Below are positions 142 to 40,739 of a DNA stretch of 64,000 nt, one piece after another. The translations under genes and the position numbers were made by a program. Position 1 is the first letter of the stretch. Every line of letters starts with the position of its first letter. The stretch is from assembly GCA_028023455.1 (NCBI GenBank), contig JAQFVV010000005.1, positions 22,816,001 through 22,880,000 of the forward strand. Reading direction: 5' to 3'. This stretch comes from Epiperipatus broadwayi (taxonomy: Eukaryota > Animalia > Onychophora). The notes under the pieces were generated by a model. That model was not told the origin of the DNA. It saw nothing but the letters and a program-made list of their open reading frames with translations, and made no database searches.

Positions 142-430
142 AAAATAGGCAAAACTCTCTCCATACAGTAGTGCCACTCAAAGCAAGACAGAGTAATCAA
201 TGGATGCCAGAAGGCTTGTGCATAAAATCCCTATCTAGTGCCTATTCATCCAATATCTAGTTTGGGGATATTGGATGAGTAGCACTAGATAGGGATTTTA
301 TGCACAAACCTTCTGGCATCTATTGATTACTCTGTCTTGCTTTCAGTGGCACTACTGTATGGAGTAAGTTTTGCCTATTTTAACAAGTTATGAGCAAGCG
401 TGGGAGATAGCGATCATGTGATGTTTAAGG
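142..430. mobile_element. Family A (hammerhead-bearing, Penelope-like) fold-back insertion, copy 1
   Basis: Inverted arms ~142-258 and ~266-381, plus a 49-nt tail on the right. 13-bp direct repeat TAGAATAAGAATT at 129-141 and 431-443. Same sequence family as copies at 2679, 16058, 22642, 28386, 29056, 34168, 35304, 39889 and 40685. Confidence 0.9.
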
Positions 431-455
431 TAGAATAAGAATTGTATAATATAAA

Positions 456-1278
456 TGTAATCACCGGTAACATAAAAGTTGGAAATCAAAAAAGCACATT
501 GTTTTCAAAGAAAAAGTAAAGTACTCCAGAAGAAAAGATAAGAAATAATTAATAATAGAAAAAGGTTGGCTTAAAGAAATAAAAACAAACGTATAGTCGT
601 TTATTTAATAAGAAATAATTAATTACAGAATTTTGGCATGCTAAAGTCCTGTTTGTTAACGAAATAATCGTGGTAAGAAAAAATATAAATTAAAACTTGA
701 AAAGATTTTGTTTGGGATTAAATTAAAATTCACTCATTAAATCTGTATGTCGAGATTTAATTAGTGTGAGGATAAGAATGTAGTGGCGTGTAAATAGGGA
801 AAAATTGTTGCTACAATTGTTTTGTGTCTTCATTGTTTTTCATGTGAGATGTCGAGCAAGATCGCGTGAGTGTTAGCCGCAGTCACCGATGAGTTTCCTA
901 TCCCAGGCACCAGTTACTTGAAAATTAATGAGCTGGTTAGGATTCCATACAGATCGCCCTGAGCTTATTATTATTTTTTATTCGCCTGAAAAGGCTCGCA
1001 GAGGAATTACCACCAGAGGGTAATATGATTTTATTTTGTCACTTAGACTTTTAATTAATATTGTGGATTGAGACATTAGAACTATCTATAGTAAAATATA
1101 TCTATAGGTATAGATGTGCAGAACAGTATTGAGATTGAATTCTAAATGTTTCAGTTGTGTGGATTGCATAGTGATATATATTTTGTCTATTTATTCAATA
1201 AATAAATAAATTTTCATTATATTGGATATTTGAAATTATTTAATTCTCACTTATCGTATTTTGCTGTGATCTGTTACA
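456..1278 (+). mobile_element. Possible solo LTR
   Basis: TGTAAT... start and ...GTTACA end, AATAAA runs near 1198, GC/CpG-richer core at 840-1020. No TSD found. Confidence 0.25.
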
Positions 1279-1488
1279 TTTTTTTTGTTAACAGATATAT
1301 AGCACTATGTAATATCTATATCTCCAAAACATTTTTTTTTTTTTTTATCAGTAAGGAATCAGGATTCAAAGCTGGAATTAATGTGTTTGTGCATCTAGAA
1401 GGCGTTGAAATTTAAAACGTATGATAGATTCTTCTAAAGAACAAACATCAATTTTCTTGGGAATATGATTGAAATAAAATCTATTTTT

Positions 1489-1672
1489 GGTAGTCTTCGG
1501 TTAGCTTTGCTACCAGCTAGCTGGTGGAATGTTCCTGTGCTTACGCATGGGGAACAGCTCCACCTAGCGGCTGGAACAAGCATTGCTGCTTTTGGCCCCT
1601 ACTATGGATATTTCTGTGTGTTTACACAGAAACCGCCTCTAGCGGCAGGGGTACAGCTAATCGAAGACCACA
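1489..1672. mobile_element. MITE, 184 bp
   Basis: 18-bp imperfect TIR (GGTAGTCTTCGGTTAGCT versus reverse-complemented right end TGTGGTCTTCGATTAGCT). 8-bp TSD CTATTTTT at 1481-1488 and 1673-1680. Confidence 0.75.
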
Positions 1673-2170
1673 CTATTTTTAATGTAACTATCATTTTAAT
1701 CTTGGAATGCACTAATCTATAATCTGTCCAACAATCTGTGCTTGTATGTGCTCAATACAAAAGGGAATTGTCTTGTATTCTGACTCCTAATTATAATGAA
1801 ATATATTAAATTCCATTGTTTCAGTGTGAATACATCCATGTTATTTTATAGCCATTTTTCACCTAAAACAAATGTGATAATCAATGCAGATGTTGTTGTA
1901 CCTGAATTCAATAATAAGAAACCATTTGAATTTACAGCATCAATACCATTATTTCCCATGAGTTTTGATCAAAATCTATTTATATTAACATGTGCATTAA
2001 AGTCTTCAAGAAGAAAAAAAATGATCTTTTAATAGTATTATTATAATAATGCTGTTGGAACAAGGAATAAGAGTTTTTCTTCTCGAATCTAAGATTGAAA
2101 CATGGGCACTAATAAAAAGATCAGCAATATCTTTGTGAAATATAATAACTACTCTTTCTTATTGCATTGC

Positions 2171-2406
2171 CAAATATATACCATATAATACTAAATTGTC
2201 CAAGCACTTTGCTACTGTTACTCAATGTTTTTTACCACCCTTTCTTACAGTTTACAGTTTCGATTGCCCCAGCAATCTTCAGAACTTTATATCTCCTAAC
2301 CTCAACTGTGCAATCGAAACTGTATACTGTAAGAAAGGGTGGTAAATAAAGCATTGTGTAACAGTAGTAAAGTGCTTGGACAATTTAGTATTATATAATA
2401 TATTTG
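2171..2406. mobile_element. Fold-back with degenerate minimal hammerhead (Penelope-like remnant)
   Basis: ~97-bp inverted arms (2171-2267 and 2310-2406). Minus strand 2250-2285 reads GTT-CTGAAGA-TTGC-TGGG-GCAA-TC-GAAAC-T-GTA-AAC. No clear TSD. Confidence 0.65.
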
Positions 2407-2678
2407 TGCATGGCAGATTTTAATATGGTATGAGATAAACCTAATAATGATCAATTTTTAATCGTAGATACCATTTTGCAATCAGTAACTTAACAAAAAT
2501 TGCTTTTTGCAGATGGTCTGGGTAAAAGCAGTAAAATATAATTAATGCAAAAAAATATTAATATATACTGTGGATTTTTTTATATTCTACATTATTAAAT
2601 AAATTTAAACCATTTTTTTCTCCCATAAATTTTAAATAATTAAACCTTTTAAAGTTAAATAAAGGAATTTAACTATTT

Positions 2679-3112
2679 AAACAAAGGCAAAACTCTCCAT
2701 ACAGTAGTGCCACCCTGTGCCAAACAGAGTAATCAATGTATGCCAGAAGGCTTGTGCATAAAATCCCTATCTAGTGCCTACTCATCCAATATCCCCAGTC
2801 TAGTTTCTGGCTTGTGATCATCATCAGTGAGGAGCCTTGGATCTGAGAGCACTGCACTTAGATCTTAGGATCTAATGTAACCCTCCAGCAGCCACCTTTT
2901 AACTCTACTTTACTACAAAACTATGAGAATGAAATTGAAAACATTGTTAATATCTTCAATCTAAGCTCAATAGCTTATATAGTCATATGGGTCTGAACTC
3001 AATTCAGCTCCCATATATTTTGGCACAGGGTGGCACTACTGTATGGAGAGTTTTGCCTTTGTTTACAACAATTATGTGCTAGTATAGAGAAGGTGATCAT
3101 GTGATGTTTAAT
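2679..3112. mobile_element. Family A fold-back insertion, copy 2
   Basis: Long arm 2679-~2945 and short inverted arm ~3019-3064, plus a 48-nt tail. TSD AATTTAACTATTT at 2666-2678 and 3113-3125. Confidence 0.9.
2793..2833 (-). ncRNA. Type I hammerhead motif, family A (cleavage triplet mutated to GAC)
   Basis: TCCTCA-CTGATGA-TGAT-CACAA-GCCA-GAAAC-TA-GAC-TGGGGA. Stem I pairs TCCTCA/TGGGGA and extends through TCCAA/TTGGA, CTCA/TGAG and AGTGC/GCACT. Confidence 0.75.
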
Positions 3113-3961
3113 AATTTAACTATTTGTAAGCTTATAACCATTTCCCAGGGCCTCTAATAATATTAGATATTGGCAGCGGAATTATGTAAATAAAATTATG
3201 TCTATGGATTACCAGTAATTGGTCTATAACTTTAATCCATAAGTAATGCCTAGTTACTTTTATAATTATTTTAATGAACTTTTATTTTTATGGAACACCA
3301 AACTAAGTGTTTTAATATATGACAATGAACTAAATACACTCACATAGTTTATAAATGTTCCATATCCCTGTCACTAAATGTTTTCAGTAAAACATGAGGT
3401 CACAGCTGCCATCAACATAAAATAAATTTTAATTTTTGCATTAAAGTTATTCTTTAGCACTCCTGAAGTCTATGGATTAATCAAAATTATTAGAAAATCA
3501 AAGATTATAAAAGGCATTGTATTCAAATGCATAGATGTGGGTTTTTAAAAGTTTTAATGTTTTACTATTTTTTAAATACACAAATTGACTACAAGCCAAT
3601 TACAAATTTTGATACTATTAGCTTAATTCCTAAATTATAAACATTACTAGAATAAATAAATCTCAAATGGGAAAAACATTTTGATTGCAATATTTGTTTG
3701 TCAAGAGAATCTTCATTTAAACTATAATCTAAGAAAAACTGTCCAAGTAAATTACCCGTAATAAAGAGAATTACAATCAATTTAAATTCTAAATCGCTTC
3801 AAGCAGATTTTTTACTAGTAGAAATTTCAGGTGAGAAAAAGAATGATCAAAAACAATATGAAATTCAAACATTTATCATTCATACACATCCATAGAAATA
3901 ATAAATCAGTAATGTAATTTATAGAACTTCTTAAAACATTTATGATTATAAAATAATGAAT

Positions 3962-4280
3962 AATAATCAGAAAATAATAATTCTTTACAACAGCTATATA
4001 ATCAAATAATAATTTTATGCATAAAAAGCTTTTTTCAGCACCTGCTTTGGTGCCCTTTTCAAATGTTATTAATCTATTTAACGTTAACGAATCACCTAAC
4101 ATAAAATGTTAAATAGATTAGTAACATTTGAAAAGGGCACCAAAGCCGGTGCTTAAAAAAACTTTTTATGTATAAAATTATTACTTGATTATATATAGCT
4201 GTTGTGAAGAATTATTATTATTTTCTGATTATTATTTTGTGGAAGAGCAGCATAAGGATTTTTATTCCTTTCCAATTTTG
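3962..4280. mobile_element. Family D fold-back insertion with hammerhead-like topology
   Basis: ~120-bp inverted arms (3962-4082 and 4108-4233) and a 47-nt tail. 12-bp TSD AAAATAATGAAT at 3950-3961 and 4281-4292. Confidence 0.8.
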
Positions 4281-4769
4281 AAAATAATGAATGAATTATA
4301 GAACTTTTTTACCTAGAATTTTGAAACGATAATAATCAATTCGTATGTATGTCTTATAAATGATAACATTTGAATTCTTGCCATAAATATCTATTAATGG
4401 TAATTTGTGATGCTTTAGAATTTAAAATCATTAATAAAAATCCTTCTGTTAACTAATTTTTTCAGATTTTTTTACTTAGTTTGTAAAATGGACATTTCAC
4501 TCTTGAAGATATTTTGCAACATCTATCAACTTTAAAATGTAGAAGTAATTATTGTAGAAACTTTGTTACATGAAGATTAGATTAAATAACGATTTATGGA
4601 TTTTCAGAAATGTTCACAACCAATAAGTTCTGTGGAGTTTTTATTCTTGCTTGAAGCAATGAATCTTTGTCAGTAATAGATGTCAGTGATGAAGTAGCTG
4701 GGAAAGAACTGATCCCAAAAGTCATGAGTGTCATTTCAGAACTGTGGTCTCTTTTTATTCACTTCTTCT

Positions 4770-5415
4770 TTTTTTATTTTCATCTTCTTTGTTGGTCTAC
4801 TTTTTTATTCTCTTCTCTTTGTTTATTATTGTCTGCTCTTTGTTGGTCTCTCTTTTTATTATCTTTTTCTCTTTGCAGGTCTGTTTTTATTATCTTCTTT
4901 TAGTTTATTGCCATTCTCTCTTTGTAGGTCTCTCTCTTTATTCTCCTCTTTGTTTATTATCATATTCTCTTTGTTGGTCTCTCTTTTTATTCTCTTCTCT
5001 TTGTTTATCATTTCTTTGTTGGTCTCTTGTTATTCTCTTCTTCTCTTTGCTGGTCTTTCTTTTTATTATCTTCTCTTAGTTTATTCTCACCTTCTCTTTG
5101 TTGGTCTCTCTTTTTATTATCTTTTTCTCTTTGCAGGTCTGTTTTTATTATCTTCTTTTAGTTTATTGCCATTCTCTCTTTGTAGGTCTCTCTCTCTTTA
5201 TTCTCCTCTTTGTTTATTATCATATTCTCTTTGTTGGTATCTCTTTTTATTCTCTTCTCTTTGTTTATTATCATTTCTTTGTTGGTATCTTGTTATTCTC
5301 TTTGCTGGTCTTTCTTTTTATTATCTTCTTCTCTTAGTTTATTCTCACCTTCTCTTTGTTGGTCTCTCTTTTTATTATCTTCTTCTCTTTGCTGGTATCT
5401 CTTTATCATCTTCTT
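4770..5415. repeat. TC-rich compound minisatellite with a 258-bp higher-order duplication
   Basis: ~30-bp units of the CTCTTTGTTGGTCTCTCTTTTTATTATC type. GCAGGT landmark recurs at 4875 and 5133. The F/L/S-rich plus-strand ORFs are low-complexity artefacts. Confidence 0.85.
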
Positions 5416-8400
5416 TAAAAGAAAAATAATTGGGATAACATGGAAGCATCCTCTCTTCTCTGGGTTCCTTCCATTAGTTACTGATCATTTTCTTTTGAAT
5501 CACATTCTTCTTTCATCTTTTTCACTTTTTCTATTATGAGCATAGATATTTCTACTAGAGACTTTTACTCTTCAAGAAAACTTTGTTAAATACAAATATG
5601 ACTTTTTAAAAATATCTTTTAAAATAAATTTAACATCACCTCCTTTTCCATACAGCCAAATTTCACCATACTTAACACTACTACTATATTATTATTACCC
5701 TAATCTGCCTTTCTTTCAACCTTATTATTTCAATACCTGAATTTATTTGATTTATTTTCCAATTTTATCCTGTTTCTAGATATATGATGGGTTTCCATTT
5801 TCCTTGTATTTTTATTATAAGTACATATACATGTACAAAAACAAGTTCATGTTAAGAACTATTTATCAAAATCTTTCTTACAGATCTGATGAGAACGTTA
5901 CAGCAAAAGAATGCATAGTGATCTGAAATTCTGGGGTAGATACAGAATCCAGTCATTGGACTATAAGTATGCAATGCAGCATGAACAACCAAAGGTCTAT
6001 CTCAATTTATTCACTATAAGCTATTGCAACCCTTGGTATGAAAAAAATGCAAAAATATTTGCAAAACACTGCTCCTTTCAGTTTTAAGACCTGGAAAATA
6101 CAGAATTATGCCTTGCTCCCTTTCTGAAAAACTTAGGGGCTAGGGATCATAGCAGGACTATATTAACTGGACCATAATAAACAATAAAAAATATAAAAAT
6201 CTGAAAAAGAGTTGGAGCAATACCTGGAAAAGAACACTTCATGGAGTTGCATGAAAACATTGCATCCTCAAGCCAACAACAAAACCTTTCATCCATCATC
6301 AAAACTGAATATATCTAAAACAAATTTCAACAGTCAAAAACTTAATCCAATCTCCAAAATAATGCTTTATGTTCAACTTTAAATATGAACTCCTTAAATA
6401 AATTGTTCTATCATCATCTATAATCTTGTTGCATTCCACAATAATGTTTTAAATTAATTCTGCATCAAAATACAGAATTAGAATTTTTCAGGTGTATTTC
6501 TGAAATTCAAGTTTCACTGACTACCAGAACCTGATCATTATTGGGCCCCCAGTTGGATCACCAATTGTAACAGTCCAAATAATAGTGGTCCCACAAGTTG
6601 GGCAAACAATATGAAAAATAAAGGGGTTAATCTGAGGATACAATATCCCACATTCAGGTGCAATTATAACAGTATGGAAAATTCTAGTGGGTGCACCTAG
6701 GGTAATGGCACTCATCATCAATATCAAATAAACAATGTAAAAGGAATGAGCATGAGAGATCAGCCCAGAACTAACTATAAGTTCACCAGCATTACATAAA
6801 AGTAATAATCATTTATCTGAATGATCAATAATAATAAAATAAATCAACAGTCACTCTTATGACTGGATTTGAAAGTAGTCCACTATAAACCAGGCTAATT
6901 ATTAGTCACTGTCAAACCTAGGGTAGGAATACAAACAATAATTATCTGGATGCATATATTAAGGTGCTACTCCATCAAAATACAACAATAAGTCAAATAA
7001 TGCTGAAATACTAAAAACATCCTGACCATCATCAATGCTCTGACCATTTAGTACCATTCATACTGGCTAACTATAAATTAAATTTCTAAACAAATAAATG
7101 AAATGAAGTGCAAGGACTTTAACCTTTCAATTTAGCAGGAGACAGAATTTTGACTTTTGACCAATTCGCTCCCTGGTGAATTTTTTCATAAGTATTATAC
7201 ATTAAAATGTGTAGAAAACTATATTTTATTATACATAATTTTTGCTAAAAATTTTGTGGTAGAAGTGGGAAATTCAAAATTCCTGCTCTTACAATAGACA
7301 TAAGCCCCACCCTGACATGTTCAACCATTGTCTGTTGCAAAGGCTGTAAAACATTTGGTGTTTTATGATGTTTAAAATAAATACTTCCAATGACCAAAAA
7401 CTTGTTTACTTGTGAATTTATTATGGTTTTAGATATTTTTTAAAAAATAATTTATACTATATTTACTAGATATCAAGAAATATAAATTATTAATAACTTA
7501 TTTTGAGTTGAAATACTTTATTTTCAAAAATATAATGTTATATTAGCAGAGAATCTAAGCATGGCCTGAAGCAATTTACAAGCTTAGTTTCTATGTAAGC
7601 AATCTATTTATATTTGCAAGTATAGAAATATCGCAATTTTGCAATAAATATTCAAAAATTTTAAACTTTTAAAGCGTAATTCATTATATATATAAGAGAA
7701 ATAAATATTCATTTGAATGTTTAAAAATAATAAGAATTAAGAAATATTTTGTTGATTTTAAAAAGTGAAAATCTTTCTAGAAATGATGACATCTAAACTC
7801 TTTGTTTTGTTTAAAATCTCATTTTTTTAATATTTACAGAAAAAAAATGTGAACAGTTAAAATTTATTTTAGTAGTAAACAAAAATATCTATTAAATGAA
7901 GTCAAATTTATTATTTTCAGATAAGTAATAATCATTTTATCACATATTTTATGTTGATGTGTGAGACAAAAAATGTCAGAAAATGCAGAGCTTGAGAGGG
8001 TTAAAGGATATCCCTTTTATGCCAACCATGATCATCATCATCTGCATGTTCATATCACTAAATACAAATGCCTACTCCATAATAACTCATGCACAAATCT
8101 AGCTCAGGAAGCAAAAACTTTACAAACTTACTTTGAGCAGGAGATAAATAAATAAATATAGCAGCTTATTATAATTCACTTCAAATAATTCATAGGTTTA
8201 CCCTATTATATGTAAATAGTTTTATTGGGATCATTAATAAATCCTAGAACATTAAGCTATCATAAAATAAAATACACTGAAATGTATGAAATAGGAATTG
8301 GATAGAATAAAGAAATTAAGACTAAAAATATTTTTAAAACAGTTATTTAATAACTAATTGGTTAACAATAACAAAAAAATGATGTGATAGTATGAAATTT

Positions 8401-12300: not shown

Positions 12301-12343
12301 TCTTACACGTTTCACTTTTCAGCAAAAAAAAACTTTTATTGTT

Positions 12344-16057: not shown

Positions 16058-16196
16058 TAAACAAGACAAAACTCTCCATATAGTAGTGCCACCCTGTGCC
16101 AACCAGAGTAATCAATGGATGCCAGAAAGCTTGTGCATAAAATCCCTATCTAGTGCCTACTCATCCAATATCCTCAGACTAGTTTCTGGCTTGTGG
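16058..16196 (-). mobile_element. Family A fragment (single arm)
   Basis: Matches the family A body. Keeps GAAACTAGTC on the minus strand but ends before CTGATGA. No TSD seen. Confidence 0.85.
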
Positions 16197-21940: not shown

Positions 21941-22641
21941 TATTAAATATTTTCATTCTACTATTTATTTCACTTCGTATAATTTGATTAACAAAGTATT
22001 TTGAAAGTTCATAATCTTATACTGCATTTGATCGATCACTATTAAATATAACAATTTATTATATATTGAAAATTGCCTAATTCAAACATAATCCTTGATA
22101 TTTACCAATTAAACCAGCATTTTTCAAAATTCCCAGGGTCTTATTATAGTCAGTGATAAATTCAAATGAAATACATATATATATTATATTATGAGGATAC
22201 AGTACAATAGAAAGTATTTAAAGTTGCAGATCTGTATATTTTTAAGGATAAATTTTTGATAGTTACAAATGTACATGAATTTCACAGATAACTTCAAAAG
22301 TAATTCTAAAAATGATAAGATGGTTTATTATCTTCATTTCTTTTTAATTAATAATTTATTAAATGTGCTCTAAATTTTATTTTGTTTTTAATTTAGTGTT
22401 TTTAAAATGTGGATATGATTTTTTTATAGATCATCATTTCTCAACCAGACATCACAATGCACTAGTGCATGAGTTAGCAAATTGCAGCTTTTTAATCCCA
22501 AGCTTGAGGTTTTTTTTATGATGATAAATGTAAATTCGTGTTTTATTTTTACTTGAAATTTGTAAAATATTTTTATGACTCTAGGAGAGAAAAAATTCAC
22601 TTTCCCACATTGCTGTTGGATTCAACCTTATATAATAATTA

Positions 22642-22753
22642 AATCACTAAGCATTACATGATCACCATTCTTTATGCCTACACAAACCTTCCTGCATCCA
22701 TTGATTACTCTGACTTGCATTGAGTGGCGCTACTGTATGAAGAGTTTTGCCTC
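22642..22753. mobile_element. Family A insertion, short copy
   Basis: Inverted tail fragment joined at TTATGC to the 3' part of the body. 11-bp TSD TATAATAATTA at 22631-22641 and 22754-22764. Confidence 0.8.
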
Positions 22754-23352
22754 TATAATAATTACTGTATAAGAAGAATGTTTAAATAATTAGAAATTTA
22801 TGAATATATTGTTAAAGTAATTTTTGTTTTTAACAGAATTTCAATTTTCATTAGATTTAAATTAGTTTCTGTTTTTTCTATTACTAAAATAAATGTTGAA
22901 ATACAATTATAACCATTCAGAAATTATATTTTTCACTTATTCTCTTGAAGGTCTTTTAATTTTTTAGTCAAAATATTTTAACAAAATAATTCACGTTAAA
23001 AAAAAGTTACCGATCCTTAACTAAGTAGACTACAAAAAATTTTGAACAAGTTGTCATAAAAGATAGACAAAAAATTAATATTTATTATTTACATATTTTT
23101 TTTAATCAAAAATATTTAAAATATATGTCATTAAATTAAAATATATTGATAAAATTATTGGAGAAAAAGTGAAATAAATTGCAGTTGATTTAAATTTTGA
23201 AAATCTCTTTCATAATCAAAATTCTTTAGATATTTTCCTATGCTTCAAAAAAGGTCAAGTTTGGCACATTTATTTATAGTAATCATAATTAATAACTTTT
23301 TTCCCACTTTTATACAATACAAATATTATTTTCTTCAAATAATTTGAGATTA

Positions 23353-28385: not shown

Positions 28386-28472
28386 GATGCAAAAAATCCA
28401 GATGTATTAAGTCCAGATCCAAAACTCCTCACTGATGAAAGCCATAAGCTAGAAACTGATCTGGGGATATGG
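28386..28472 (+). mobile_element. Family A fragment with hammerhead core
   Basis: TCCTCA-CTGATGA-AAGC-CATAA-GCTA-GAAAC-TG-ATC-TGGGGA at 28426-28467. Stem III is mismatched. Confidence 0.75.
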
Positions 28473-29055
28473 AAGGAACAACATTAAATAGGGAATTATT
28501 AGACATTACCATGCACATGGAAGCAGAAGAGAAGTAAGAAAAATAGATTTGCTACTTTAAAATAATGTGAAGGCAGGAAGTCGTGACATTTTGTCGGAGA
28601 GATGGGATTTTTGTTTTAGATTTTGTACGTTTTTTTTTTTTACTTTAATGTCTCCTTCTTAAGAAATTTAATGGAAAGTCCACATGGTATTTTTTAGAAA
28701 TAGAAACTTTTATTGCGTAAAGAATTTGTGCTATTTTTTTTATTATAAAAAAGTCTTTTATGATTTTAAAATACTATATTTTTACCATTCACAATTCAAA
28801 GATGCCAAATTACTATCAGAGATTTTTTAAAATTATTTTTGAGTCTTTAGAAATTATACATCATCTAATAAATTAAAAAACAAATTTTATCCAGAATTAT
28901 ATTAATAATTTTTATTAATCATTCATTAGATTAGAAATTATCCACTAATGATAATGTAATTTTTACTCCATTCTCATGAATGGTTTCTGTCCGCTTTTAA
29001 TGCCTTGTGGAGGGATGTAGTCATAAACATATGACCAAAAACATATGAAAAAGAT

Positions 29056-29307
29056 AGGCAAAACTGTCTCCATACAGTAGCGCCACTCTAAGCAAGAAAG
29101 AGTAATCAATGGATGCCAGAAGGCTTATGCATAAAATCCCTATCTAGTGCCTACTCGTCCAATATCCCCGAACTAGTTTCTGGCTTATGGCCTCCATTGA
29201 TTACTCTGTCTTGCTTAGAGTGGCACTACTGTATGGAGAGAGTTTTGCCTATTTTAACCACAGTTATGAGCATGGAAGATAGTGATCATGTGATGTTTTA
29301 AGGTTTA
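29056..29307. mobile_element. Family A fold-back insertion
   Basis: Inverted arms joined at a TGGC microhomology near 29190, with a 57-nt tail. TSD ATATGAAAAAGAT at 29043-29055 and 29308-29320. Confidence 0.9.
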
Positions 29308-29539
29308 ATATGAAAAAGATCTATGATCTCCCAAGATGTCCTTTTTGTGCTGAACCAGCACTCATCTGTTGGCCCAGACCACAATCTTTGTCATATGTTT
29401 ATGATTTCATCCCCTACAATGTGTTAAAAGTGGATAAAAACCATCCCCGACCTTGCATGAGAATGGTGTAGTGAAAATTAAACTACAGAAATATTATTCA
29501 TTTTGTCCAGAGATGTAATAAATTATAGGATAGATCAAA

Positions 29540-30021: not shown

Positions 30022-32363
30022 ATTTAAATAATATAATAAATTTTAAAATTAAACTATATTTCTTAGTTTTCTGTTACTAGGCTGTGTCATTGGATGAGCC
30101 TCTAGTCTCCTGATGTAATAAAATACATAATATTCGTATTGTTAATTGCTTAGGCAATCGTTGACATTCCAGAGTCTTATTATCAGACTAAACATTTAAC
30201 CATTTCCATTAATATGAACAGAGTTTTTTAAAATTTATTATTCTCTGCTGAGAATCCATCTTGAGTCCATTACTCTCTGACTATTTTAAATCACGCAGAG
30301 GGAAGATACATTTGAGTAACAGAAAACTACTATAGTTTCAATTTTATTAAATTAGCTGTATTTAATTTCTGATGTTTTAGCCACAAATGAATTAAATATT
30401 TGATTGAATTGTCATGACAATGATAACTTAAAAATAAAATGTCCAAAATATATTTCAACTTTCATAATTACATAGAGTTTCCACTGAAATGTACAAATTT
30501 ATTTTCTTTCCCTACTAATTTTATCAGAGCTTAAAGCGAAATAACATTCCAACTGAACTTTGATAAATGCTGGTTTAGACAAATATTTTCATTTTTTATT
30601 GAATACCCATATTTGAAAACAAAAATGTTAACTACTTTATTTATTTGCAACAAACTTTTAATACTTAAAGATGTATCATTTATAAATTTTGACACGGGTG
30701 TAATGGTTGCTTCAGCCTAAGTACAGACAAGGTGTATATTAAAAATGTAATTTTAATGTAATAAAGTATAAACAAGTGAAAAAATTTGAACCGTGTGTTC
30801 TTTTGTTTGTATTAAGTTCATTAGTCTTTTATAAATATAAATTAAAACAACTTATTGCATAACAAAGCCTTCTCCAAAAGCTCTCAAAGAGGAATCATAC
30901 ATAAGGCGTTAATTATTAGGTTTTCTATTTGCCAGTATGAAAATAGTTTGAGGGATGTTTCTATCATTTATTGGGAAAGACTGCTTTACTAATATCTGAT
31001 CAAAATTTTCAAGTTTTTCTTGGCTTGCATTTGAATCCAGACACCACTATATACTGCAAGACACTTGATTCCTTATGTATATACAATGTTAAATACTGAT
31101 GACTTCTGTTTTCATTCAATATCATTAGTAAAAGCATTGATGGCAGTGTCAACAGACTTGTATGAAATATGAAGTCAAATTAAAACAAGGAAGTCTTTTA
31201 TTATTTATTTTCTTTCTAAGAGAGTTGGGGATTGAGGCAGAAAGATTGAATAAGGATGGGAATTCCCACTGTGGGAACTAAAAAAATACAATACATTAAG
31301 TTCTTGGGGGGGGGGGGCGTTGAAATTTTTGCAAACAATGTAAAAACACGTTGAGTTATTAGAGATGTGGGTGGAATTACAGAAATTAAAGTCATTGAAA
31401 AAAATCTGTAAGATCCTAAAGTGTAATGAGAAGAATAAAGCAGAATAGACATTGGGAAATATTTATTATAAAGAAGTGGGCGTATAATAATTTAGATACT
31501 TTGTGAAATGGAAAAAGGAAATTTACAGTTGCTTTGGCAATTGGAATTAAGAAGTAAAGCAAATAGAATAGTAATAAAAGTATTGTACATTTTTTATATA
31601 ATAAATGTGAGATATGGAGAATAATTTAGAAAGTGGTGATGGGTGCCTGCTTAACATTTAGAAATGAGGTGATTTGTATAGGTAACTTAAATTTTTTTAA
31701 ATTAGAAATGGCAAAAGATAGATTTGCATGGGAAAGTGATCTGTGGAAATTGGGGAAAGTCATTGATAAAAATAATAGATTGGATTATATGGAAAAAGGA
31801 CAACAATCATTGAGCAAGAACAGTTTTACAATATGCAAAGCTGATAGGTAATAATTTATTTATATATATTTAAATAAGAAGGGGAATAAATGTATAGAAA
31901 ATATGTTAAAGATACTTAATTTTTAGATAGGATAAAAGAGGATATAGATAAGTTGTTAGAGAAAAAGAAATAAAAGTTATAGAAAATGACTGAATAAAAG
32001 AAATTATTTGAAATACAATAAAAATTAGATGAGAAAGAATGCATGCTAAGGGAGCTTATTTTTATTTAGACATCATGGGAAGAAACCAAAAATAGAATAT
32101 GGATTGTAATATAGTTTATACTATACTTCATACAATAGTCCCAAAATGAAAACAATGTTTTCAATTCAGTATCTACACATTTTGGTGTCTTTGGTCTTTA
32201 ATAACCATAGTCGCCATCATCCTATTTGGCAGGATTGGTATGTTGTGTTTAGATATAATTTATGTAAAAATAGAAGAGTACTGAATATTGTTTTTTGGAG
32301 TGTGGGACATTGAAAGTGAATTATAATAAAATTGTACAGCGAATATGAGAAGATGGAGGTTTT

Positions 32364-32809: not shown

Positions 32810-33172
32810 GGCCTTACTATTAATTTTCATTGATTAAATCCACGAGTACAATAATGATTGATAATGAAGAAATAGATCTCTACCGTCTAATTAAAAATAT
32901 TTATAAATACAATTGCTTATCCAAGTCTCTGAACCTGTGATATGTCTGTTCGGCGTTACTATTAGTTTTTATTGATTAAATCAACGATTGCATTAGTAAT
33001 TGATAATGAAGAAAGAGGTCACTACTATCTAATTACAAGTATTTATAAATACAATTGCTTATTTAAGTCTGAATCTGTTACAAAAGTCTGTCCGGCGTTA
33101 AATATTTGTTTCCATTCATAACATTAATAATTTATAATGACGAAAGAGGTCACTACTGTCTAATTAAAAAAT
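32810..33172. repeat. 142-bp tandem repeat, about 2.5 copies
   Basis: GGC(C/G)TTA landmarks at 32810, 32952 and 33094. ATAATGA(A/C)GAAA(G/T)AG block in each unit. Confidence 0.8.
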
Positions 33173-33912: not shown

Positions 33913-33960
33913 CAGGGTTGGCGCTACCGTTTAGATAAACTAACTGCTTAGGGTGCTAGT
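33913..33960 (+). mobile_element. Single hAT (Tip100-like) terminus, degenerate
   Basis: CAGGGTTGGCGCTACCGTTTAGATAAACTAACTGCTTAGGGTGC resembles CAGGGCCGGC...TAGGC...GCCTAGGGCGC ends. No partner end found. Confidence 0.35.
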
Positions 33961-34167
33961 CATGAAGAAGCACTAAATTTCAACCTATGCTGTATTCATA
34001 TTTTACTAAAATGTCGAAATTAAATAATGATAATTCTTGAAATTTTCATGTAAATTTTTTTTATGTGTTTCCCTATTCTTATTCCTGATAATAAATAAAA
34101 GTTATATTATGTTTATTATAATTTATGAAATAATTATATCTTATGTTTTGATATAATGTATTGTTTT

Positions 34168-34481
34168 AAACCACTAACCATCACATGATCACCGTTTCTT
34201 ATGCTTGCTCATAACTTATTAAACAACTATATAGCTTATTAAATAATCACCATATTCTTACCACCTTTAAGCAAATAATGTTTATTATATAATTAAACAG
34301 GCAAAACTCTCCATATAGTAGTGTCACTCAGTGCAAGCCAGAGTAAACAATGGATGCCAGAAGGCTTGTGCATAAAATCCCTATCTGGTGCCTACTCATC
34401 CAATATCCCCAGACTAGTTTCTAGCTTGTGACTTTCATCATTGAGGAGCCTTGGATTTAAGAGCAATAGGTGCACACTGCA
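34168..34481 (-). mobile_element. Family A copy (tail, ~70-bp interruption, body)
   Basis: Tail 34168-~34230 and body 34293-34465. Hammerhead core reads ATGATGA...GAAACTAGTC. Confidence 0.85.
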
Positions 34482-35303
34482 TATGCAAAAATAATTTTTA
34501 ACTCTAAAATTAAAATTTCACTTTAAAAAATATCCAACTTAATAACGGGTGCATTTATAAACTTTGCTTAAGGTGAAAAATAACCTGATGCTCAGGTGGT
34601 ATTATTGACAATAGCAGCTAAGTAATATTGGCAAAAATTTATATAGTGAAACAGTACAATAATTTAAACTTAACAACTTGGGTTTATTAACTTGAGGCAA
34701 AACAAATAGATATTATGAGAAAGAATTTGATACTTTGACTAATTTGTTAGCAATGAACAAGACATCTTTAAGTACAGACTTATTCTTCTTAAAGGGTGAC
34801 TTAAGCTTCTTCATATGTATATTTAGTATACATTGTGATTACTGGCCTGTATTTGCTTTTTTGTTTCTCTACTCTTACGAAAAATAGACAGATTTTACCA
34901 TTTGAACAATCTGCATAAATTAGTATATATTAGTTTACTGAAAATTTAAATGCATGCTTAGCATATGTAAATTTTCTAGAGTATTTACATTTTGGGAGAA
35001 ATTTATTCATTTTCTGTCTGACTAAAATTATAATAAATTTATGAACTTTGTTAACAAAACCAATAAAATATATGTATATACACACACAGTGCTATAGTTA
35101 CTCAGATAGTGAAATCCTCCCTTCACTATAGAAAATAGTATGTTTAATCACAAATATAATTTGTTAATCTCTGTGGTCTTCTGCAATCTTTCACATACCT
35201 TGGTAGAGGTATGGATCTTTCTTCATCCTATTTTGTTACACTCTCTTCTTGCTAAGACTTCTGCAGATCCCTAATGTTGTTGGTTGATCATAAGATCAGT
35301 TAC

Positions 35304-35615
35304 AAGTCAATAAACATCACATGACCACCATTTCTTATGTTTGTGTATTACTGTTATTAAGGTGTTTTCAGTTTAAGACTCATAGTTTTGTAGTTAAGTG
35401 TGGCTGCTGGAGGGTTGCATTAGATCCTAAGATCTAGGTGCAGTGCTCTCACTTCCAAGGTTCCTCACTGACAAAGGCCACAAGCCAGAAACTAGTCTGG
35501 GAATATTGGACGAGAAGCCACTAGATGGGGATTTTATGCACAAGCCTTCTGGCATCCATTGATTACTCTATCTTGCTGTGTGTGGCAATACGTATAGTGA
35601 GTTTTATCTGTTTTA
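35304..35615. mobile_element. Family A insertion (inverted tail plus long sense arm)
   Basis: 14-bp TSD ATAAGATCAGTTAC at 35290-35303 and 35616-35629. Hammerhead CTGACAA...GAAACTAGTC at 35468-35497. Confidence 0.9.
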
Positions 35616-35689
35616 ATAAGATCAGTTACTCAAAATAGATAGTCTGCTCTCATTTATTTGTTTATTACTAAGTATTTCTTCATCTAGGG

Positions 35690-38600
35690 TCTCTGATGAT
35701 GTGTTAGCACAATCAACCTCTTTTACTGATATTGGAGATCTCATCCACATATTTATTGGTTTTAATGGCTCATTCTAATGGTTTTTCAAATGAATGATAT
35801 GTCTTCTAAATTCATTTCCATTGGGCATCTGTACTAGTCTCAATTGTTTTGATAGAACTTTCAATACGAATCTGGGTAGATACTTTTTTTTTTGGAACAT
35901 CTCTTATTGACACAGTATCTGCAACATTAAATTTTACGCTGTCAAAATGAATTTCTCTTAATGTGCTCCTTCTTACACTAATATAGAGACATGTATACAA
36001 ACATTTCAACCCATTAACATTTTGTTACATATTATTTTTAGTAAATGTACTCTGTGTAAATTTTAGTAGAACATGGCAGCCATTAGAACTTTATTTATAT
36101 CCTTCCTTATAATAGTTTTTATTTGCATTGACTTTAACTGTTAGTGTTGAATCTTATTAACTAAAAAGTCTTTTAACTGTAATCATCTGAAAGCAGTTCC
36201 ATTATCAGATATGATAAGTTTCAGGATATCTGTGGCAAGCAAATAATTCATTTAAAACTTGGACGATATACTCTGCACTTGTGTTTTTAATCACCTTGCA
36301 TTCAGCCCATTTAGAATATGAATCAATCGCAGATCAGGAAAATATATCTGTTAAATAGTCTGCCATGATCCATGTGTAACCTCTGTAAGGGACTTCTGGC
36401 TCGAGGTCAAAGTTTAAACTTTTTTGAAGGTAAGTTCACTCTCTATACCACTTTATTGCTGTTCAATCTCATGACTCATTCTGCGCTGCCACATATGATC
36501 ATGCTAATTCCTTCAAACTCAAGATTCACAGTTGTCCTTTACATAACAAGTCTAACACCTGTTTTCTACCTTCAGTTAGAATTAATATGTGATCAATCAT
36601 TATTCCATAGAGATTCTATAACATAACTAGGTAAATTTCCAGGTCATCCATTTTTAATTCATTTTTTATTATTTAATACCTGGAATTATCTTTAGTTCAT
36701 TTTGTTACTATGGTGCTATTTAAGGCATTTAACTTTATTGAATCTGTATAATTAAACTCTGTGATCTTATGCCCAAACCTGCCTGTATCCAGTAGACTTG
36801 TTAGTATCTGCATGACCTATTTCTCTATCCTTATTATAGATGAGTTTGAAGTCATATGATGCCAAAATATTAATCCAGTGGATCATTCTTTATCTAGTGT
36901 GATCAGGAGTCTTCTTCAAGTTTCCCAGAATTTCTAGCAGGTCGATGGTCTGTATAAATTTTGAACCATGTCTTAAATGTATTTGGTGAAATTTTTGTCA
37001 CAACGAAGATAATTGCTATTGCATCTTTATCTAGCTGGCTGTAGTTCTTTTCTGCTACTGTTATAGTTCTGAATACATATGCAATTGGATATTTACCTCC
37101 ATAGCAAATATGTGATATTAACAGCCTTACACCATACCCAGAAGTATGTGTTGTAACTATCAATTTTTGATCATTGCCATTAGAGATTAATAGCTTTTAG
37201 CCCTCTTAAATGCTTTATCATGCTCTACTCCCCATTTCCATCATTGTTTCTTTTTTAATAATTGATATAATGACATTTCTACGTGTGCTTTGTCTTTCAG
37301 AAAACTCAAAGAAATTAAGTAATCCCAGAAATGCTTGTAAGTCTAACATTTTTTGATTTAACAGCATTTTGGGGTTTCACCTTTTCTGGTTTTGGGTATT
37401 TGACTCTATTTCTCAGAATATATTCCAGAAACTTTATTTCAGTAGTTGCCAAATGCACTTCAAAACATTTAATCTTGCACCAATTTTCTAGTTTAGCATA
37501 AACTCTATGTACATATGTTGACAGTTTTTTCTATTTCAGCAATTATTAAGATGTCATCAAGGTAAGGAATGACTTCTTCCATCCCTGACTATCCATTTTC
37601 ATTTGTAACATGTTTGGTGCTATTGTTATTTCATATGATAATTTGTCACACTTAAATAATCCCAAGTGGATATTGATGATTAAAAATTCACCATTCTGGT
37701 CATAGGAATTTGATGATATGCATAACTTACATTTTTTTGTAATGATGCTAGATATCTCACAAATATTGGGTTCAGTATTATATGAAAATTATCACATAGA
37801 TGAAATGCCCTGTCTGGCTTTAGGATTACCAACAACTCTTCAACAGATGAAAGTATCTTTTAGCCAATTCTTGAATTGTTTTCCCACTTTAGACTTTCAG
37901 GCAAAGGGAACCTTCAAGCAGTCTACACACAAATGGTCATATGTCTTTTACTAAATCAGTATTGACCGGTCATATAATGAATTTTAATGAGATTGACTTC
38001 AACTGTATGCTTTTTACTGACTCAACCCAAATTCCTAGAGATTTAAATTATTTTCTTTTCAATTTTGGGCTTAAATCCTTTTTTTCACCATGTAGAGAGG
38101 TAAATATTTAACTTTCAAATTAATTTTAACTGGTAGTTCTGTTTCCATTTATGCCAGACACTACCACATGTTTTCTAGTGTTATTTCATAAATTTTTTAT
38201 ATTGATCCAATCATTTTGGGATATTAGAGACAATGCTGCTCTGCTATTTATTTCCATCTTAATTTTTTATTCAAAGATATGAATATCCAACATAATATGG
38301 CTAATATCCACAATGTTTGTTTCTTTAATATCAGTTTTTCTTCTGTTAATTCCTCCTCTTGATTTAAAGTTTAGACATATCTTACTTTTAGTCTTTCTCT
38401 CCTTGATTACATAATTCATGATAAATGCCCTATTTTTCCACAAGCATGGCATTGTTCTTTTATAAATTTACAGTTTTTATCCAAATGACTTTTCTCACTA
38501 CAGCAATAACATATTCAAATACTGTTTGTATTTCTGCAGTTTAAACTTTCATCTTCCATTTTATTTACAGTCATTGAGAATGTCTATACTATTTGGAATT

Positions 38601-39100
38601 CTGTGACATTTCCAAATATTGCTTTGTAAGCTAAAAAATTTTCTATTGTATGTTTATACATTAGATCAGGTTCACTCAGCAAGATTTGTCTGAGGTTAGC
38701 TGGTTAAGCAGCATGTCATCCATATTGGTATTAAAGTTTTTCCCATATTACAATCAAATTTTTTCATACATTGTTTAGCTTCTGTTCTAAATCTGAAATG
38801 TGCTAACAATTTTGATATCGTAGGTTAAAATAAATAGTTAACTTCTCTTTAATTCTCAATAAGGTACTTCTTTGGGAGCTTTTGGTTCACAGATTTCATT
38901 GGCTACTTGCAGTACCTTTTTCCTAGATATCCACATTAATGTTTCTACTTTTATTTTATTGTTTACAATATTTTTTGGTGAGCATGTATCTTTCTAAATG
39001 TTCCGCATTGATTTTCCAATCCAATGCATTGTTAATATCAAATTTGCTAATGGAACTATTTTTCAGTGCCACTATTATTCCTTGTTGATTGGTTATAGCA
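35690..39100 (-). mobile_element. Degenerate Ty3/Gypsy LTR retrotransposon internal region (gag-PR-RT-RH-IN)
   Basis: gag start SISKFD...DWK...HLERY (~39060). CCHC knuckle CHACGKIGH (~38440). Protease relic MEINSRAALSLIS (~38240). RT EVIPYLDDILII (YLDD at 37553-37564). RNase H PIAYVFRTITVAEKNYSQLDK...TDHRP (36903-37163). Integrase IDSYSKWAEC/ISDNGTAF (~36190-36330). Many stops and frameshifts. LTRs not found. Confidence 0.9.
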
Positions 39101-39888
39101 TTCTATTAATGTACATGGATTTATGAACTATAATTTTGATCTAATCTACTATACCTAGACAACTTTTTTTTCACTTTTGCCCCAGTTTTCTTGAAATGTC
39201 GACTGTACTAGTATTTTTCTATGTATCTGTGTAAATGAGTTCGCTGTTAGTTACAATGATATAAAAATAGAAAATAGTTGTTAGATACATGTAACAGTTT
39301 GTTACATATTTTCAATAGCAATGGTAAAAGCCAAAAAATAGATTGGTGAAGTGGATATTATATCACCTGGTGTCGTTGATTATTCAAGAAATGAAAAGAC
39401 AGCACAAAATATTGAATAAACAGAAATATGGATCAATATGTTTTTATATGAACCTATTTGTGGCCTACTTATTGGTTTGGATAGTCCTTGCAAAACTTGT
39501 TTATAAAACAGTTTTTTTCTTCTTCTTGGAAATGTAATAACAATGCTCATTTATGGAAGGTTGTTGTATGTATATATACATTACAATGGAATCAACATGT
39601 TTGCTTCATGTTTGGCTTGAATTCAAAGTTCTCTGTAGATTTTTTGTAATGACTCCAGTGCCCTATGTGAATTAGTGCCACGGCAGACTCTGGCGAATAG
39701 CGTCCTTAGATTGAATCCAGTTCTGACACTTTTAGGCATTCAAACTTATGAACTCCTGAGCAAATGAAACCATTTGATTTTTTTTTAATTAATCATTTAT
39801 TAAATTTTTTAAAAAAATGTTCAAAAATAGATAAATCTGTGTCGTGATATCTTTTTCACCTTTTTTTAAATATCACTATTGTGATCTT

Positions 39889-40224
39889 AAATCAATAAAC
39901 ATCACATGATCACCACTTCTTATGCTTGCTCTTAACTATTATTAAAACAGGCAAAACTCTCCATACAGTAGTCCACTCAGTGCAAGCCAGAGTAATCAAT
40001 GGATGCCAGAAGGCCTGCACCTAGATCTTAGGATCTCTAAGATCTAGATGCAGTGCTCTCAGATCCAAAGCTCCTCAATGATGAAAGCCACAAGCTACAA
40101 ACTAGTTTAGAGATATTGGATGAATAGGCAATAGATAGGGATTTTATGCACAAAACTTCTGGCATCCATTGATTACTCTGGCTTGCATTGGGTGGTACTA
40201 TTCTATGGAGAGTTTTGCCTGTTT
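39889..40224. mobile_element. Family A fold-back insertion with internal deletion
   Basis: 56-nt tail on the left and inversion centre at GATC near 40030. 12-bp TSD TATTGTGATCTT at 39877-39888 and 40225-40236. Confidence 0.9.
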
Positions 40225-40684
40225 TATTGTGATCTTCTAATCATATGTTGTCTTCTTAATTAGACATTTGATATGTTGCCATGCAAGCATTTTTTTTTAT
40301 TTCACTTGTTTTTTTTAAGGATCTATGATTATTTTATTATTTTCTAAAGCTTTTTTATTCTTCTTAGATTTAATTGCATGTCTTTCCTTGTCTGATTTAT
40401 TGCAGTGATAGAGAGGCTTGGATCATTACACAGCTCTGCAGTGATCTTATAAACTCTCAAGCAATTTAAATTCAATGAATTACTTCTAAAATTAGGATTA
40501 TCAATTTTTTATATTAACTTAATAGCTTTGATAATCTATAGCTTTTAGTTAATACATTTTACATCTCCCTAATCAATCATTTCATGATCAATGGGAAATG
40601 GTACTTATGGTTAGAAAAAACTGAAACTAATGTAGATGAAATCTACCTCCCACAAAAATCATGCTCAAGTTTACCATAAAATAT

Positions 40685-40739
40685 TTTAAAACAGCTTGAA
40701 AAAGCTTAATAAATGGTGATCATGTAATGTTTAATGGTT
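40685..40739. mobile_element. Minimal family A insertion (about 10 bp of inverted end plus tail)
   Basis: TTTAAAACAG then ...GGTGATCATGTAATGTTTAATGGTT. 8-bp repeat TAAAATAT at 40677-40684 and 40740-40747. Confidence 0.6.

Follow-up and report, generated by a model that had tools for sequence, protein, structure and literature searches.

Two adjacent internal RT start sites were reported for Penelope-like elements (PLEs) by Frangieh et al. 2024 (PMC11167929); both DNA strands were extended, and the stretch between the two start sites constitutes the "tail". Craig et al. 2021 (PMC8557442) described PLE insertions in which one copy is inverted and 5'-truncated and a single end carries a tail. 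Mobilization of animal hammerhead retrozymes by PLEs has been proposed since 2020 (Cervera & de la Pena 2020, PMC7229834), and the same argument was drawn from vertebrate sequence trees in a preprint (Li, Clavereau & Pollet 2026, bioRxiv 10.64898/2026.07.22.740005). Insertion footprints form no part of the retrozyme-PLE case in either paper, and the footprint of tail and inverted arm is undescribed in the retrozyme papers (the word "tail" is absent from the 2026 preprint and "inverted" from PMC7229834). In the hammerheads of newt satellite 2 and Schistosoma Sm-alpha, helix I has 6 bp and helix II has 4 bp (PMC4209133). Helix III of the classical metazoan type has 1-2 bp with a small palindromic loop, which implies that these hammerheads act as dimers (PMC4209133).

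Herein, a repeat family (family A) is analyzed in a 64,000-nt stretch of the onychophoran Epiperipatus broadwayi (contig JAQFVV010000005.1, positions 22,816,001 to 22,880,000; the window) and in further loci of the same genome. Family A is probably a non-coding, non-autonomous animal non-LTR retrozyme that is copied in trans by the RT-endonuclease of resident PLEs.

Insertion anatomy of family A

The full unit of family A is 456 nt long, non-coding, and tandem-capable. The 456-nt period was found in locus L013 and in other loci, spacings of 452-456 nt occur genome-wide, and arrays with 402-456-nt spacing are also present. The longest open frame in a trimer of the unit has 67 codons, and no tRNA-like or Pol III module was found in the unit. 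Tens of thousands of dispersed copies populate this 5.6-Gb animal genome. Most of them are truncated head-to-head insertions, and arrays are fewer. What the preliminary description had taken for a ~300-bp element proved to be truncated arms of the 456-nt unit.

Eleven pieces of family A were located when two window copies and the 456-nt reference unit were compared with the window by blastn (Table 1). All ten copies counted in the preliminary description were recovered; the fragment at 32161-32239 is additional. Six pieces are head-to-head double insertions with 11-14-bp TSDs, as read from the sequence, each composed of an inverted 5'-truncated arm and a forward 5'-truncated arm. A seventh copy, formerly counted as TSD-flanked, is a doubtful 46-bp stub with a weak 7-bp TSD (TTTAAAA). 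This stub is probably an abortive insertion, and its assignment is uncertain because the blast match is just 28 nt. The arms of copy 1 are 90.5% identical to each other, which indicates an old insertion. No TSD was recognized at the single arm at 16058-16196, and the single arm at 34163-34465 has an interruption of ~67 bp (34227-34293) flanked by a ATTAAACA duplication.

Table 1 Family A features in the window. Sites A and B are the two outer ends defined in the text; unit numbers refer to the 456-nt reference unit.
Feature	Position	Strand	Composition	TSD positions	TSD
Copy 1, head-to-head	142-430	+	inverted arm 142-~257 to site A; forward arm ~257-430 (+) to site B, 51-nt tail	129-141 / 431-443	TAGAATAAGAATT
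Copy 1 3' module, old subfamily	311-430	+	bipartite hairpin		
Copy 2, head-to-head, youngest window copy	2679-3112	-	97.7% to reference unit; long arm (minus strand) unit 65-410 to site A; short arm (plus strand) unit 364-455(+2) to site B	2666-2678 / 3113-3125	AATTTAACTATTT
Copy 2 hammerhead motif	2792-2833	-	degraded		
Single 5'-truncated arm	16058-16196	-	unit 271-410, ends at site A		
Miniature head-to-head insertion	22642-22753	+	~40-nt inverted tail arm to site B (+9); 72-nt forward arm to site A	22631-22641 / 22754-22764	TATAATAATTA
Old internal fragment	28414-28497	+	unit 243-327, carries hammerhead		
Head-to-head insertion	29056-29307	+	inverted arm to site A; forward arm to site B (+8)	29043-29055 / 29308-29320	ATATGAAAAAGAT
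Lone fragment of unit 5' region	32161-32239	-	unit 10-89		
Single arm	34163-34465	-	unit 237 to site B (+12)		
Hammerhead in single arm	34406-34447	-	C3 -> A		
Head-to-head insertion	35304-35615	+	~55-nt inverted tail-only arm to site B (+8); forward arm from unit 145 to site A (+6)	35290-35303 / 35616-35629	ATAAGATCAGTTAC
Head-to-head insertion	39889-40224	+	inverted arm from unit 334 to site B (+10); forward arm from unit 216 to site A (+5)	39877-39888 / 40225-40236	(T)ATTGTGATCTT
Tail-only stub, 46 bp	40692-40737	+	last ~27-40 nt of tail, up to site B		

Two outer ends were defined. Site A ends in ...TTTTGCCT(+0..7), and site B ends in ...GATGTTTA(+0..12), ~52 nt beyond site A along the element. 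The corresponding RNA termini, GCCU(+n) and GAUGUUUA(+n), carry no A-run. All 30 head-to-head insertions analyzed in the window and 27 loci (6 in the window and 24 elsewhere) combine one A end with one B end, and neither A/A nor B/B was found (0/30). The chance of this outcome under an independent 50:50 choice is 0.5^30. The ~52-nt extension is present at exactly one end in 30/30 cases, in agreement with the earlier observation that one end runs 48-57 nt longer. The arms invariably lie with their 3' ends outward: among the first 100 genomic places of one family 25-mer, 15 close pairs were oriented "-,+" and none "+,-".

In the window and further loci, the TSDs measure 8-18 bp with a median of 13, and they enclose the entire composite with both arms. 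The target sites are AT-rich. The 5' truncation points are variable, and arms reach up to 3.2 units. The two arms of an insertion share private variants. Site A is the end of the TSD-flanked one-armed insertions L024 and L025, and an apparently one-armed copy without a recognized TSD ends at B (L029). This indicates that each site alone can adjoin target DNA.

The junction between the arms is distinct in 6/6 of the TSD-flanked window copies. The claim that the inversion point differs in every copy is therefore true of these six, but one rare junction recurs genome-wide (about 8 copies, 5 of them exact genomic matches). This junction, unit 364|65, occurs on at least 3 subfamily backgrounds and lies at a 6-nt microhomology, with a neighboring variant used in L006; in copy 2, the junction is at a CCAAA(A) microhomology. 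A junction-bearing master copy was considered and rejected, as the copies do not form one clade. A microhomology hot spot is the best reading of the unit 364|65 junction.

Hammerhead motif and 3' hairpin

The commonest young version of family A carries a canonical metazoan type I hammerhead motif with all nucleotides of the core (CUGANGA ... GAAA ... UH) present. It comprises a helix I of 6 bp, CUGAUGA, a helix II of 4 bp, GAAA, a helix III of 2 bp with the loop UA (palindrome ACUAGU), and the cleavage triplet GUC. The genome holds 3,948 exact matches to the 43-nt motif, versus 0 for the reversed control. In the window every hammerhead-bearing copy is mutated, and the motif is intact only outside the window, in the commonest, young version. 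Copy 2 reads UCCUCA-CUGAUGA-helix II-GAAAC-UA-GAC-UGGGGA, in which U16.1 is replaced by A (GAC for GUC) and helix II is broken by two changes. The core of the insertion at 35304-35615 is mutated to CUGACAA. The hammerhead reading of the preliminary description is correct at the sequence level.

Covariation within the hammerhead is limited to one compensatory pair, 10.2-11.2 (G-C/A-U), where the fragment at 28414-28497 has A-U. The whole hammerhead structure is not above shuffles. In contigs of four organisms, N7 and 10.1 are the only motif positions among the sites listed as varying at >=20%. The unit has eight further variable sites beyond those listed in these contigs. A search against Rfam gave no hammerhead match on the window at gathering, nor on copy 2 and one intact copy at E<=10, and just chance snoRNA/miRNA-like matches turned up. 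The Rfam model of the type I hammerhead is Hammerhead_1 (RF00163). Models of the Rfam type are expected to fail on motifs with a 2-bp helix III.

The number of genomic matches was 81,227 for a 25-mer across the cleavage site and 56,754 for a 25-mer starting at it. Copies do not start preferentially at the cleavage site, so that no role of the ribozyme is visible in the generation of the inserted template. Nothing in the DNA copies points to cleaved RNA as the usual template.

A 3' hairpin with 32 pairs was obtained from 8 copies via RNAalifold, and 3 of these pairs have compensatory changes between the old and young subfamilies. The conserved hairpin spans unit ~341-453, and sites A and B are each located 0-3 nt 3' of one of its helices. 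In the copy 1 module, the apical helix is followed directly on its 3' side by site A, and the basal helix by site B. For the unit RNA, a high degree of self-pairing is predicted (z = -4.35).

Resident Penelope-like elements and competing explanations

More than 10,240 GIY-YIG candidates were found in the genome. RVT_1 and GIY-YIG are combined in one ORF in L060; the 580-aa ORF of its close relative L050 gave no Pfam match, which may reflect composition filtering. At L034:888-3017, an EN-containing (GIY-YIG-encoding) PLE forms a head-to-head insertion whose arms are 98% identical. Its TSD (TTGAGCAATTAA) has 12 bp, and only one of its sides carries an extension, of 50 nt. This is the same footprint as that of family A. 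No PLE coding sequence was detected in the window by tblastn of PLE ORFs. A partner was searched for in 30 GIY-YIG loci by blastn (word size 7), 11-mer sharing, and Smith-Waterman comparison against shuffled queries. The 3' module, tail, or hammerhead region of family A was present in none of these 30 PLE loci, sampled from the >10,240 candidates. Matches were limited to family A fragments that lie nearby and are unrelated (L036 edge and L059). The 11-mer TTTTGCCTT, found in common with an L031/L036-type PLE, belongs to helix I of that PLE's U3-A8 hammerhead and is no shared terminus. A likeness seen by eye, TTTATTGATT, between an old family A site-B end and the terminus of an L036-type PLE was not above shuffles.

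Single copies resemble hairpins between direct repeats, as would be expected of a MITE or fold-back DNA transposon with terminal inverted repeats. However, the inversion point differs among copies, the ends are asymmetric by ~52 nt (30/30), the TSD length of 8-18 bp is unfixed, and the same termini recur in one-armed and multi-unit tandem copies. The data already contradict the MITE reading, which is hardly conceivable, and the earlier statement that fixed MITE terminal inverted repeats are absent is upheld. The tandem arrays of 402-456-nt spacing would suit a hammerhead satellite whose palindromes were formed after insertion by replication or recombination errors. We give this explanation next to no probability: the TSDs surround the whole composite with both arms, the copies are dispersed in tens of thousands, and the orientation and A/B rules are too regular for random rearrangement. 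LINE-mediated insertion can likewise yield TSDs of variable length and 5' truncation at AT-rich targets, so a SINE-like element moved by a LINE (non-LTR) RT, with inversions by twin priming, was considered. In L1 twin priming, reportedly described by Ostertag and Kazazian in 2001, the second nicked strand is said to prime on the RNA and to yield an inverted 5' segment; the two segments are reportedly different parts of one RNA, with a poly(A) 3' end. Priming by the second nicked strand is proposed for family A as well, but its arms cover overlapping stretches of the element and do not divide one RNA between them, and they can be multi-unit tandems. Both outer ends are defined internal sites, two discrete 3' termini 52 nt apart, without poly(A) or a simple repeat. 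An identical footprint is left by a PLE copy in the same genome, and movement by a LINE is very unlikely.

The remaining alternative keeps a PLE-type retroelement and assumes single priming. The cDNA from site B would snap back or switch to itself or a sister cDNA, and site A would be a stop or resolution point with no second RT start. The private variants that the two arms of an insertion have in common and the junctions at microhomologies agree with this proposal, and the one-A-one-B rule would be automatic if separate steps make the two ends. However, the arms are not mirror images; those of copy 2 begin at unit 65 and unit 364, which excludes a simple hairpin turn. The one-armed copies that end at A or at B, and the in vitro extension of both strands from internal start sites (PMC11167929), also stand against it. 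Single priming is unlikely.

For a retrozyme copied by PLE machinery, the following pathway is proposed. Unit or multi-unit RNAs would be transcribed from family A, and the PLE protein would bind the conserved 3' hairpin (unit ~341-453). In an AT-rich target, the GIY-YIG nuclease would nick the two strands at positions 8-18 nt from each other, and each freed 3'-OH would prime cDNA synthesis internally on the family A RNA. One of these cDNAs would begin immediately after the apical helix, at site A (...UUUUGCCU), and the second 52 nt downstream, immediately after the basal helix, at site B (...GAUGUUUA). The two cDNAs would extend for variable lengths and be joined head-to-head, often at short microhomologies, and the TSD would result from gap repair of the staggered nicks. 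Were only one strand primed, the product would be a plain 5'-truncated copy that terminates at A or B. Processing of multimeric transcripts would fall to the hammerhead, which would probably act as a dimer via the palindromic helix III. The structural predictions of the non-autonomous PLE/retrozyme-like element first suggested hold in the window and 27 loci, and the two priming events placed near the RNA 3' end match the two adjacent RT start sites in PMC11167929.

The strict A/B rule could tentatively be attributed to one PLE ribonucleoprotein, probably a dimer, that primes both nicked strands from neighboring sites on one hairpin; we consider this possible, with the odds somewhat against it. 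If true, it would represent an obligately asymmetric double target-primed reverse transcription, which the published in vitro data do not reveal. In those assays, either site served on either strand, and strict A/B pairing is therefore not yet explained by experiment. On the same reading, the footprint would also be direct insertion-level evidence of PLE machinery moving animal retrozymes, mostly from uncleaved RNA. Family A provides thousands of young TSD-bounded insertions with a PLE signature, from which two putative RT start sites on a conserved hairpin can be placed to the nucleotide. Models of PLE integration have to accommodate both the rule of one tail per insertion and the absence of copies that start where the ribozyme would cut. 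In practical terms, annotation will mistake copies of this sort for MITEs, and assembly from short reads will suffer from them.

Comparison with known systems

The hammerhead of family A agrees with the classical metazoan type I repeats in its helices of 6 bp, 4 bp, and 2 bp with the loop UA. It differs in the long bulged extension of helix I, and its sequence is unrelated as far as tested. With the animal non-LTR retrozymes, family A shares a non-coding AT-rich unit that is short and tandem-capable, a type I hammerhead, a very high copy number, the absence of LTR, PBS, and PPT, the coexistence with PLEs, and TSDs that, when present, exceed 4 bp. The unit is 456 nt compared with 170-400 nt in published retrozymes, and family A consists mostly of dispersed truncated head-to-head insertions, whereas the published ones form arrays. 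Retrozymes are expressed as linear and circular monomer RNAs; the runs covered for family A were contigs of unspecified library type, none of them recorded as RNA.

The insertions of family A resemble those of EN+ PLEs in the inverted 5'-truncated copy beside a forward copy, the partial tandems, and the tail at one end (PMC8557442, PMC11167929). Variable TSDs and AT-rich targets are also shared. In both, the hammerhead lies upstream of the 3' terminus by ~110-165 nt, and a structured RNA region contains two start sites (putative in family A) separated by a few tens of nt. Unlike EN+ PLEs, family A has no ORF, and it has no sequence similarity to the 30 sampled resident PLEs. Its tail is ~52 nt versus 30-40 nt in published PLEs, its hammerhead is canonical metazoan rather than minimal, and its A/B use is strictly one of each, whereas both sites serve both strands in vitro. 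The lopsided head-to-head insertions match those of the resident PLEs, so family A adds a clear case to a known kind of element and does not form a new class.

Family A insertions in the window

All ten places cited for family A, a hammerhead-bearing repeat, in the preliminary description were recovered by blastn against the window, with two family A copies and then the 456-nt reference unit as queries. An extra fragment was also found. The window has an A+T content of 72% and comes from a 5.6-Gb animal assembly. Six of the places are composite insertions with direct repeats (target-site duplications, TSDs) of 11-14 bp on both sides. They have a common layout, in which a 5'-truncated inverted arm and a 5'-truncated forward arm are joined head-to-head. 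Their two outer ends fall at ...TTTTGCCT plus 0-7 nt (site A) and at ...GATGTTTA plus 0-12 nt (site B), and site B is about 52 nt beyond site A in family A. The arm junction is unlike in each of the six. The asymmetric fold-back with TSDs and a variable inversion point, as described previously, is clearly seen in these composites. Seven TSD-flanked copies had been counted; six of them stand, and the seventh is a tail end only.

Family A places and neighbouring features in the window
Feature	Position	Observation
Composite family A insertion	142-430	TSD-bounded
Composite family A insertion	2679-3112	TSD-bounded; copy 2, youngest copy in the window
Composite family A insertion	22642-22753	TSD-bounded
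Composite family A insertion	29056-29307	TSD-bounded
Composite family A insertion	35304-35615	TSD-bounded
Composite family A insertion	39889-40224	TSD-bounded
Tail-end-only family A piece	40692-40737	Seventh; weak 7-bp repeat on each side
Extra family A fragment	32161-32239	
Small secondary insertion or duplication	34227-34293	About 67 bp of unrelated AT-rich sequence inside the tail of family A copy 34163-34465, bounded by an 8-bp ATTAAACA duplication
Family C	44125-44904	Second, unrelated hammerhead-bearing family
Separate long inverted repeat, looks like a MITE or fold-back	2171-2408	Unrelated to family A; outer arms 61 nt, 89% complementary; inner arms 40 nt, 95%; centre 42 nt
G+C-rich island amid AT-rich DNA	1497-1675	Repeated motif CTAGCGGC; no Rfam match at gathering score

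The full unit, its hammerhead motif and its predicted 3' hairpin

Copy 2 was compared with the whole genome. Young copies, 95-98% identical, extend past site B by about 55 nt, and then the next unit begins. With L013:1437-1892 as the reference, the full unit measures 456 nt; it is repeated in tandem within single insertions. In this unit, the predicted hammerhead cut follows position 290, and sites A and B fall at 403 and 455. The earlier description of a ~300-bp hammerhead-bearing element was right about the motif and too short in length, as the ~300-bp copies are truncated arms of the 456-nt unit. The family is non-coding, because no open frame above 67 codons is present in a trimer.

Exact genomic matches numbered 36,788 for the 25-mer just upstream of site A and 81,227 for the 25-mer across the cut site, more than twice as many; the reversed controls gave 0. 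Successive matches are spaced 402-456 nt apart genome-wide, with 402, 408, 443, and 452-456 nt among the spacings. These spacings and the number of cut-site matches indicate several unit-length variants or sister families with the same hammerhead/helix I region. Thousands of family A-matching pieces are present in the contigs of each of four runs (four coded organisms), and the similarity of many pieces stops exactly at site A in all four organisms.

The commonest young motif reads UCCUCA, CUGAUGA, UGGC-CACAA-GCCA, GAAA, C-UA-G, UC and, past the cut, UGGGGA. Helix I has 6 bp and continues, beyond an internal loop, into a long bulged extension. Helix II has 4 bp, and helix III has 2 bp with a UA loop, forming the palindrome ACUAGU. 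The cleavage triplet is GUC, and the putative cut between GUC and U would give a predicted 3' product starting UGGGGAUAUU. The core, the three helices and the triplet of this sequence agree with the type I hammerhead proposed previously. The architecture matches that of canonical metazoan type I hammerheads, for which action as dimers has been proposed (PMC4209133). The exact 43-nt motif has 3,948 genomic matches, versus 0 for the reversed control. Pair 10.2-11.2 shows a compensatory change between old and young subfamilies, being A-U in 4 copies and G-C in 14. Other hammerhead covariation in the same copies did not exceed that of shuffles, which is what decaying copies would be expected to show. 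Among the variable positions listed (eight further unit positions also vary), those of the motif that vary in at least a fifth of contigs are N7, a free position, and 10.1 (four organisms). Every hammerhead-bearing copy in the window is mutated. The hammerhead model search suggested earlier gave no match, as the motif was not detected by Rfam, permissive thresholds on an intact copy included.

The 25-mer starting at the cut site has 56,754 exact matches, fewer than the 25-mer spanning it, and copies do not start preferentially at the cut site. This indicates, by a test that is rough as subfamilies differ downstream of the cut site, that copies are not usually made from cleaved RNA.

A long bipartite hairpin at unit positions ~341-453 was predicted by RNAalifold from eight old and young copies. 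In the predicted basal stem, GCAUCCAUUGAUUACUCU is paired with AGAG..GGUGAUCAUGUGAUGU; the predicted apical stem is GGCA...UGCC, and a middle stem lies between them. Three pairs of the middle stem stay paired despite changes on both sides, and by eye the pairing is GGCACA/UGUGCU in young copies and CUUGCU/AGCAAG in old copies. The apical stem is followed directly on its 3' side by site A, where an unpaired A/C/U-rich stretch begins; site B comes 3 nt past the basal stem. For the unit as a whole, strong self-pairing is predicted (z = -4.35).

Insertion rules and Penelope-like elements in the same genome

Head-to-head insertions with both ends visible were counted in 27 non-overlapping loci and the window. 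Every one of the 30 pairs an A end with a B end, and there is no A/A or B/B case; free choice at each end would give this result with a chance of 0.5^30. The rule held in 20 of 20 after ten loci picked by similarity to a two-arm query were removed. The tail can be on either arm, the arms reach 3.2 units, and their orientation is always 3'-ends-out. Close pairs of the site-A 25-mer were 15 '-,+' versus 0 '+,-' among the first 100 genomic places. The TSDs in the window and the sampled loci are 8-18 bp long (median 13). One-armed insertions also exist; L024 and L025 both have TSDs and end at A, and at L029, where no TSD was recognised, the end is at B. Private variants are common to the units and arms of a single insertion, which indicates a single RNA, or at least a single source locus, as the origin of both arms.

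One junction, unit 364/unit 65, is recurrent, with 5 exact genomic matches and about 8 copies altogether. A fixed inverted repeat was considered for it and set aside, given the few copies, the occurrence in at least three subfamily backgrounds and the 6-nt microhomology (G)CCAAA(A). The junction of another locus, L006, lies at a neighbouring GCCAAA. We read the recurrent junction as a microhomology hot spot for the joining of two cDNAs.

More than 10,240 GIY-YIG candidates were found in the genome, and all 150 scored exceeded the Pfam cut-off. At L060, RVT_1 lies upstream of the GIY-YIG match in one ORF. The GIY-YIG matches form many '-,+' pairs and 0 '+,-' pairs. A head-to-head Penelope-like element (PLE) insertion at L034:888-3017 (L034:876-3029 with flanks, G000:C6351) has two EN/GIY-YIG arms that are 98% identical, a 12-bp TSD TTGAGCAATTAA, and an extension of 50 nt that only the left arm carries. 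Here a bona fide PLE has left, in the same genome, the footprint that is seen for family A. An autonomous PLE with the family A terminus, as looked for after the preliminary description, was not found: none of the 30 sampled PLE loci carries the 3' module. Two apparent family A/PLE resemblances were examined and rejected.

Another head-to-head PLE insertion may lie at L042, where a 10-bp repeat and a net tail of ~38 nt were seen. One PLE family, at L036:2170-2220 and L031:2172-2222, has a minimal hammerhead-like motif ~400 nt behind its ORF; the core of this motif is of the U3-A8 type, with UUGAAAA replacing CUGAUGA, and its helix III is the palindrome ACGU. The 580-aa open frame at L050:34-1773, which ends in the GIY-YIG region, had no Pfam match at E<=0.01; it scored 40 bits for GIY-YIG in the genome search, and its close relative L060 gave RVT_1.

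Family C forms a head-to-head fold-back with the TSD ATAATAAAATTTA. It terminates at ...GGATCGTGTG on one side and carries a ~74-nt tail ending ...GTGTTTCAGTTA on the other. Family C obeys the same one-tail rule with a different sequence, because only one end carries the tail.

Comparison with known retrozymes and Penelope-like elements

The A and B ends, the orientation, the TSDs, the PLE footprint at L034 and the PLE literature support the PLE/retrozyme-like reading put forward earlier. These data support the conclusion that family A is a very abundant animal retrozyme with a hammerhead, and that it inserts by double target-primed reverse transcription of the PLE type. In published PLE insertions, one copy is inverted and 5'-truncated, and there is a tail of 30-40 bp that is often confined to one end (Craig et al. 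2021, PMC8557442). In the Anolis PLE, cutting and extension were shown for both DNA strands, reverse transcription begins at two adjacent internal stem-loop sites, the tail is the stretch between the two start sites, and the main template is uncleaved RNA (Frangieh et al. 2024, PMC11167929). By analogy with the Anolis element, sites A and B may be the reverse transcription start sites, and the 3' hairpin may be a handle for the PLE protein.

Animal non-LTR retrozymes have been defined, with PLEs named as their likely mobilisers (Cervera & de la Pena 2020, PMC7229834), and mobilisation by PLEs is backed by vertebrate trees (Li, Clavereau & Pollet, 2026 preprint, 10.64898/2026.07.22.740005). The tail and inverted-arm footprint is not described in these two papers. 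The present results go modestly beyond the literature in the strict one-A-one-B rule, in the location of sites A and B, each just past the 3' side of a helix in a conserved predicted hairpin, and in the insertion-level evidence that links a retrozyme family to the PLE machinery.
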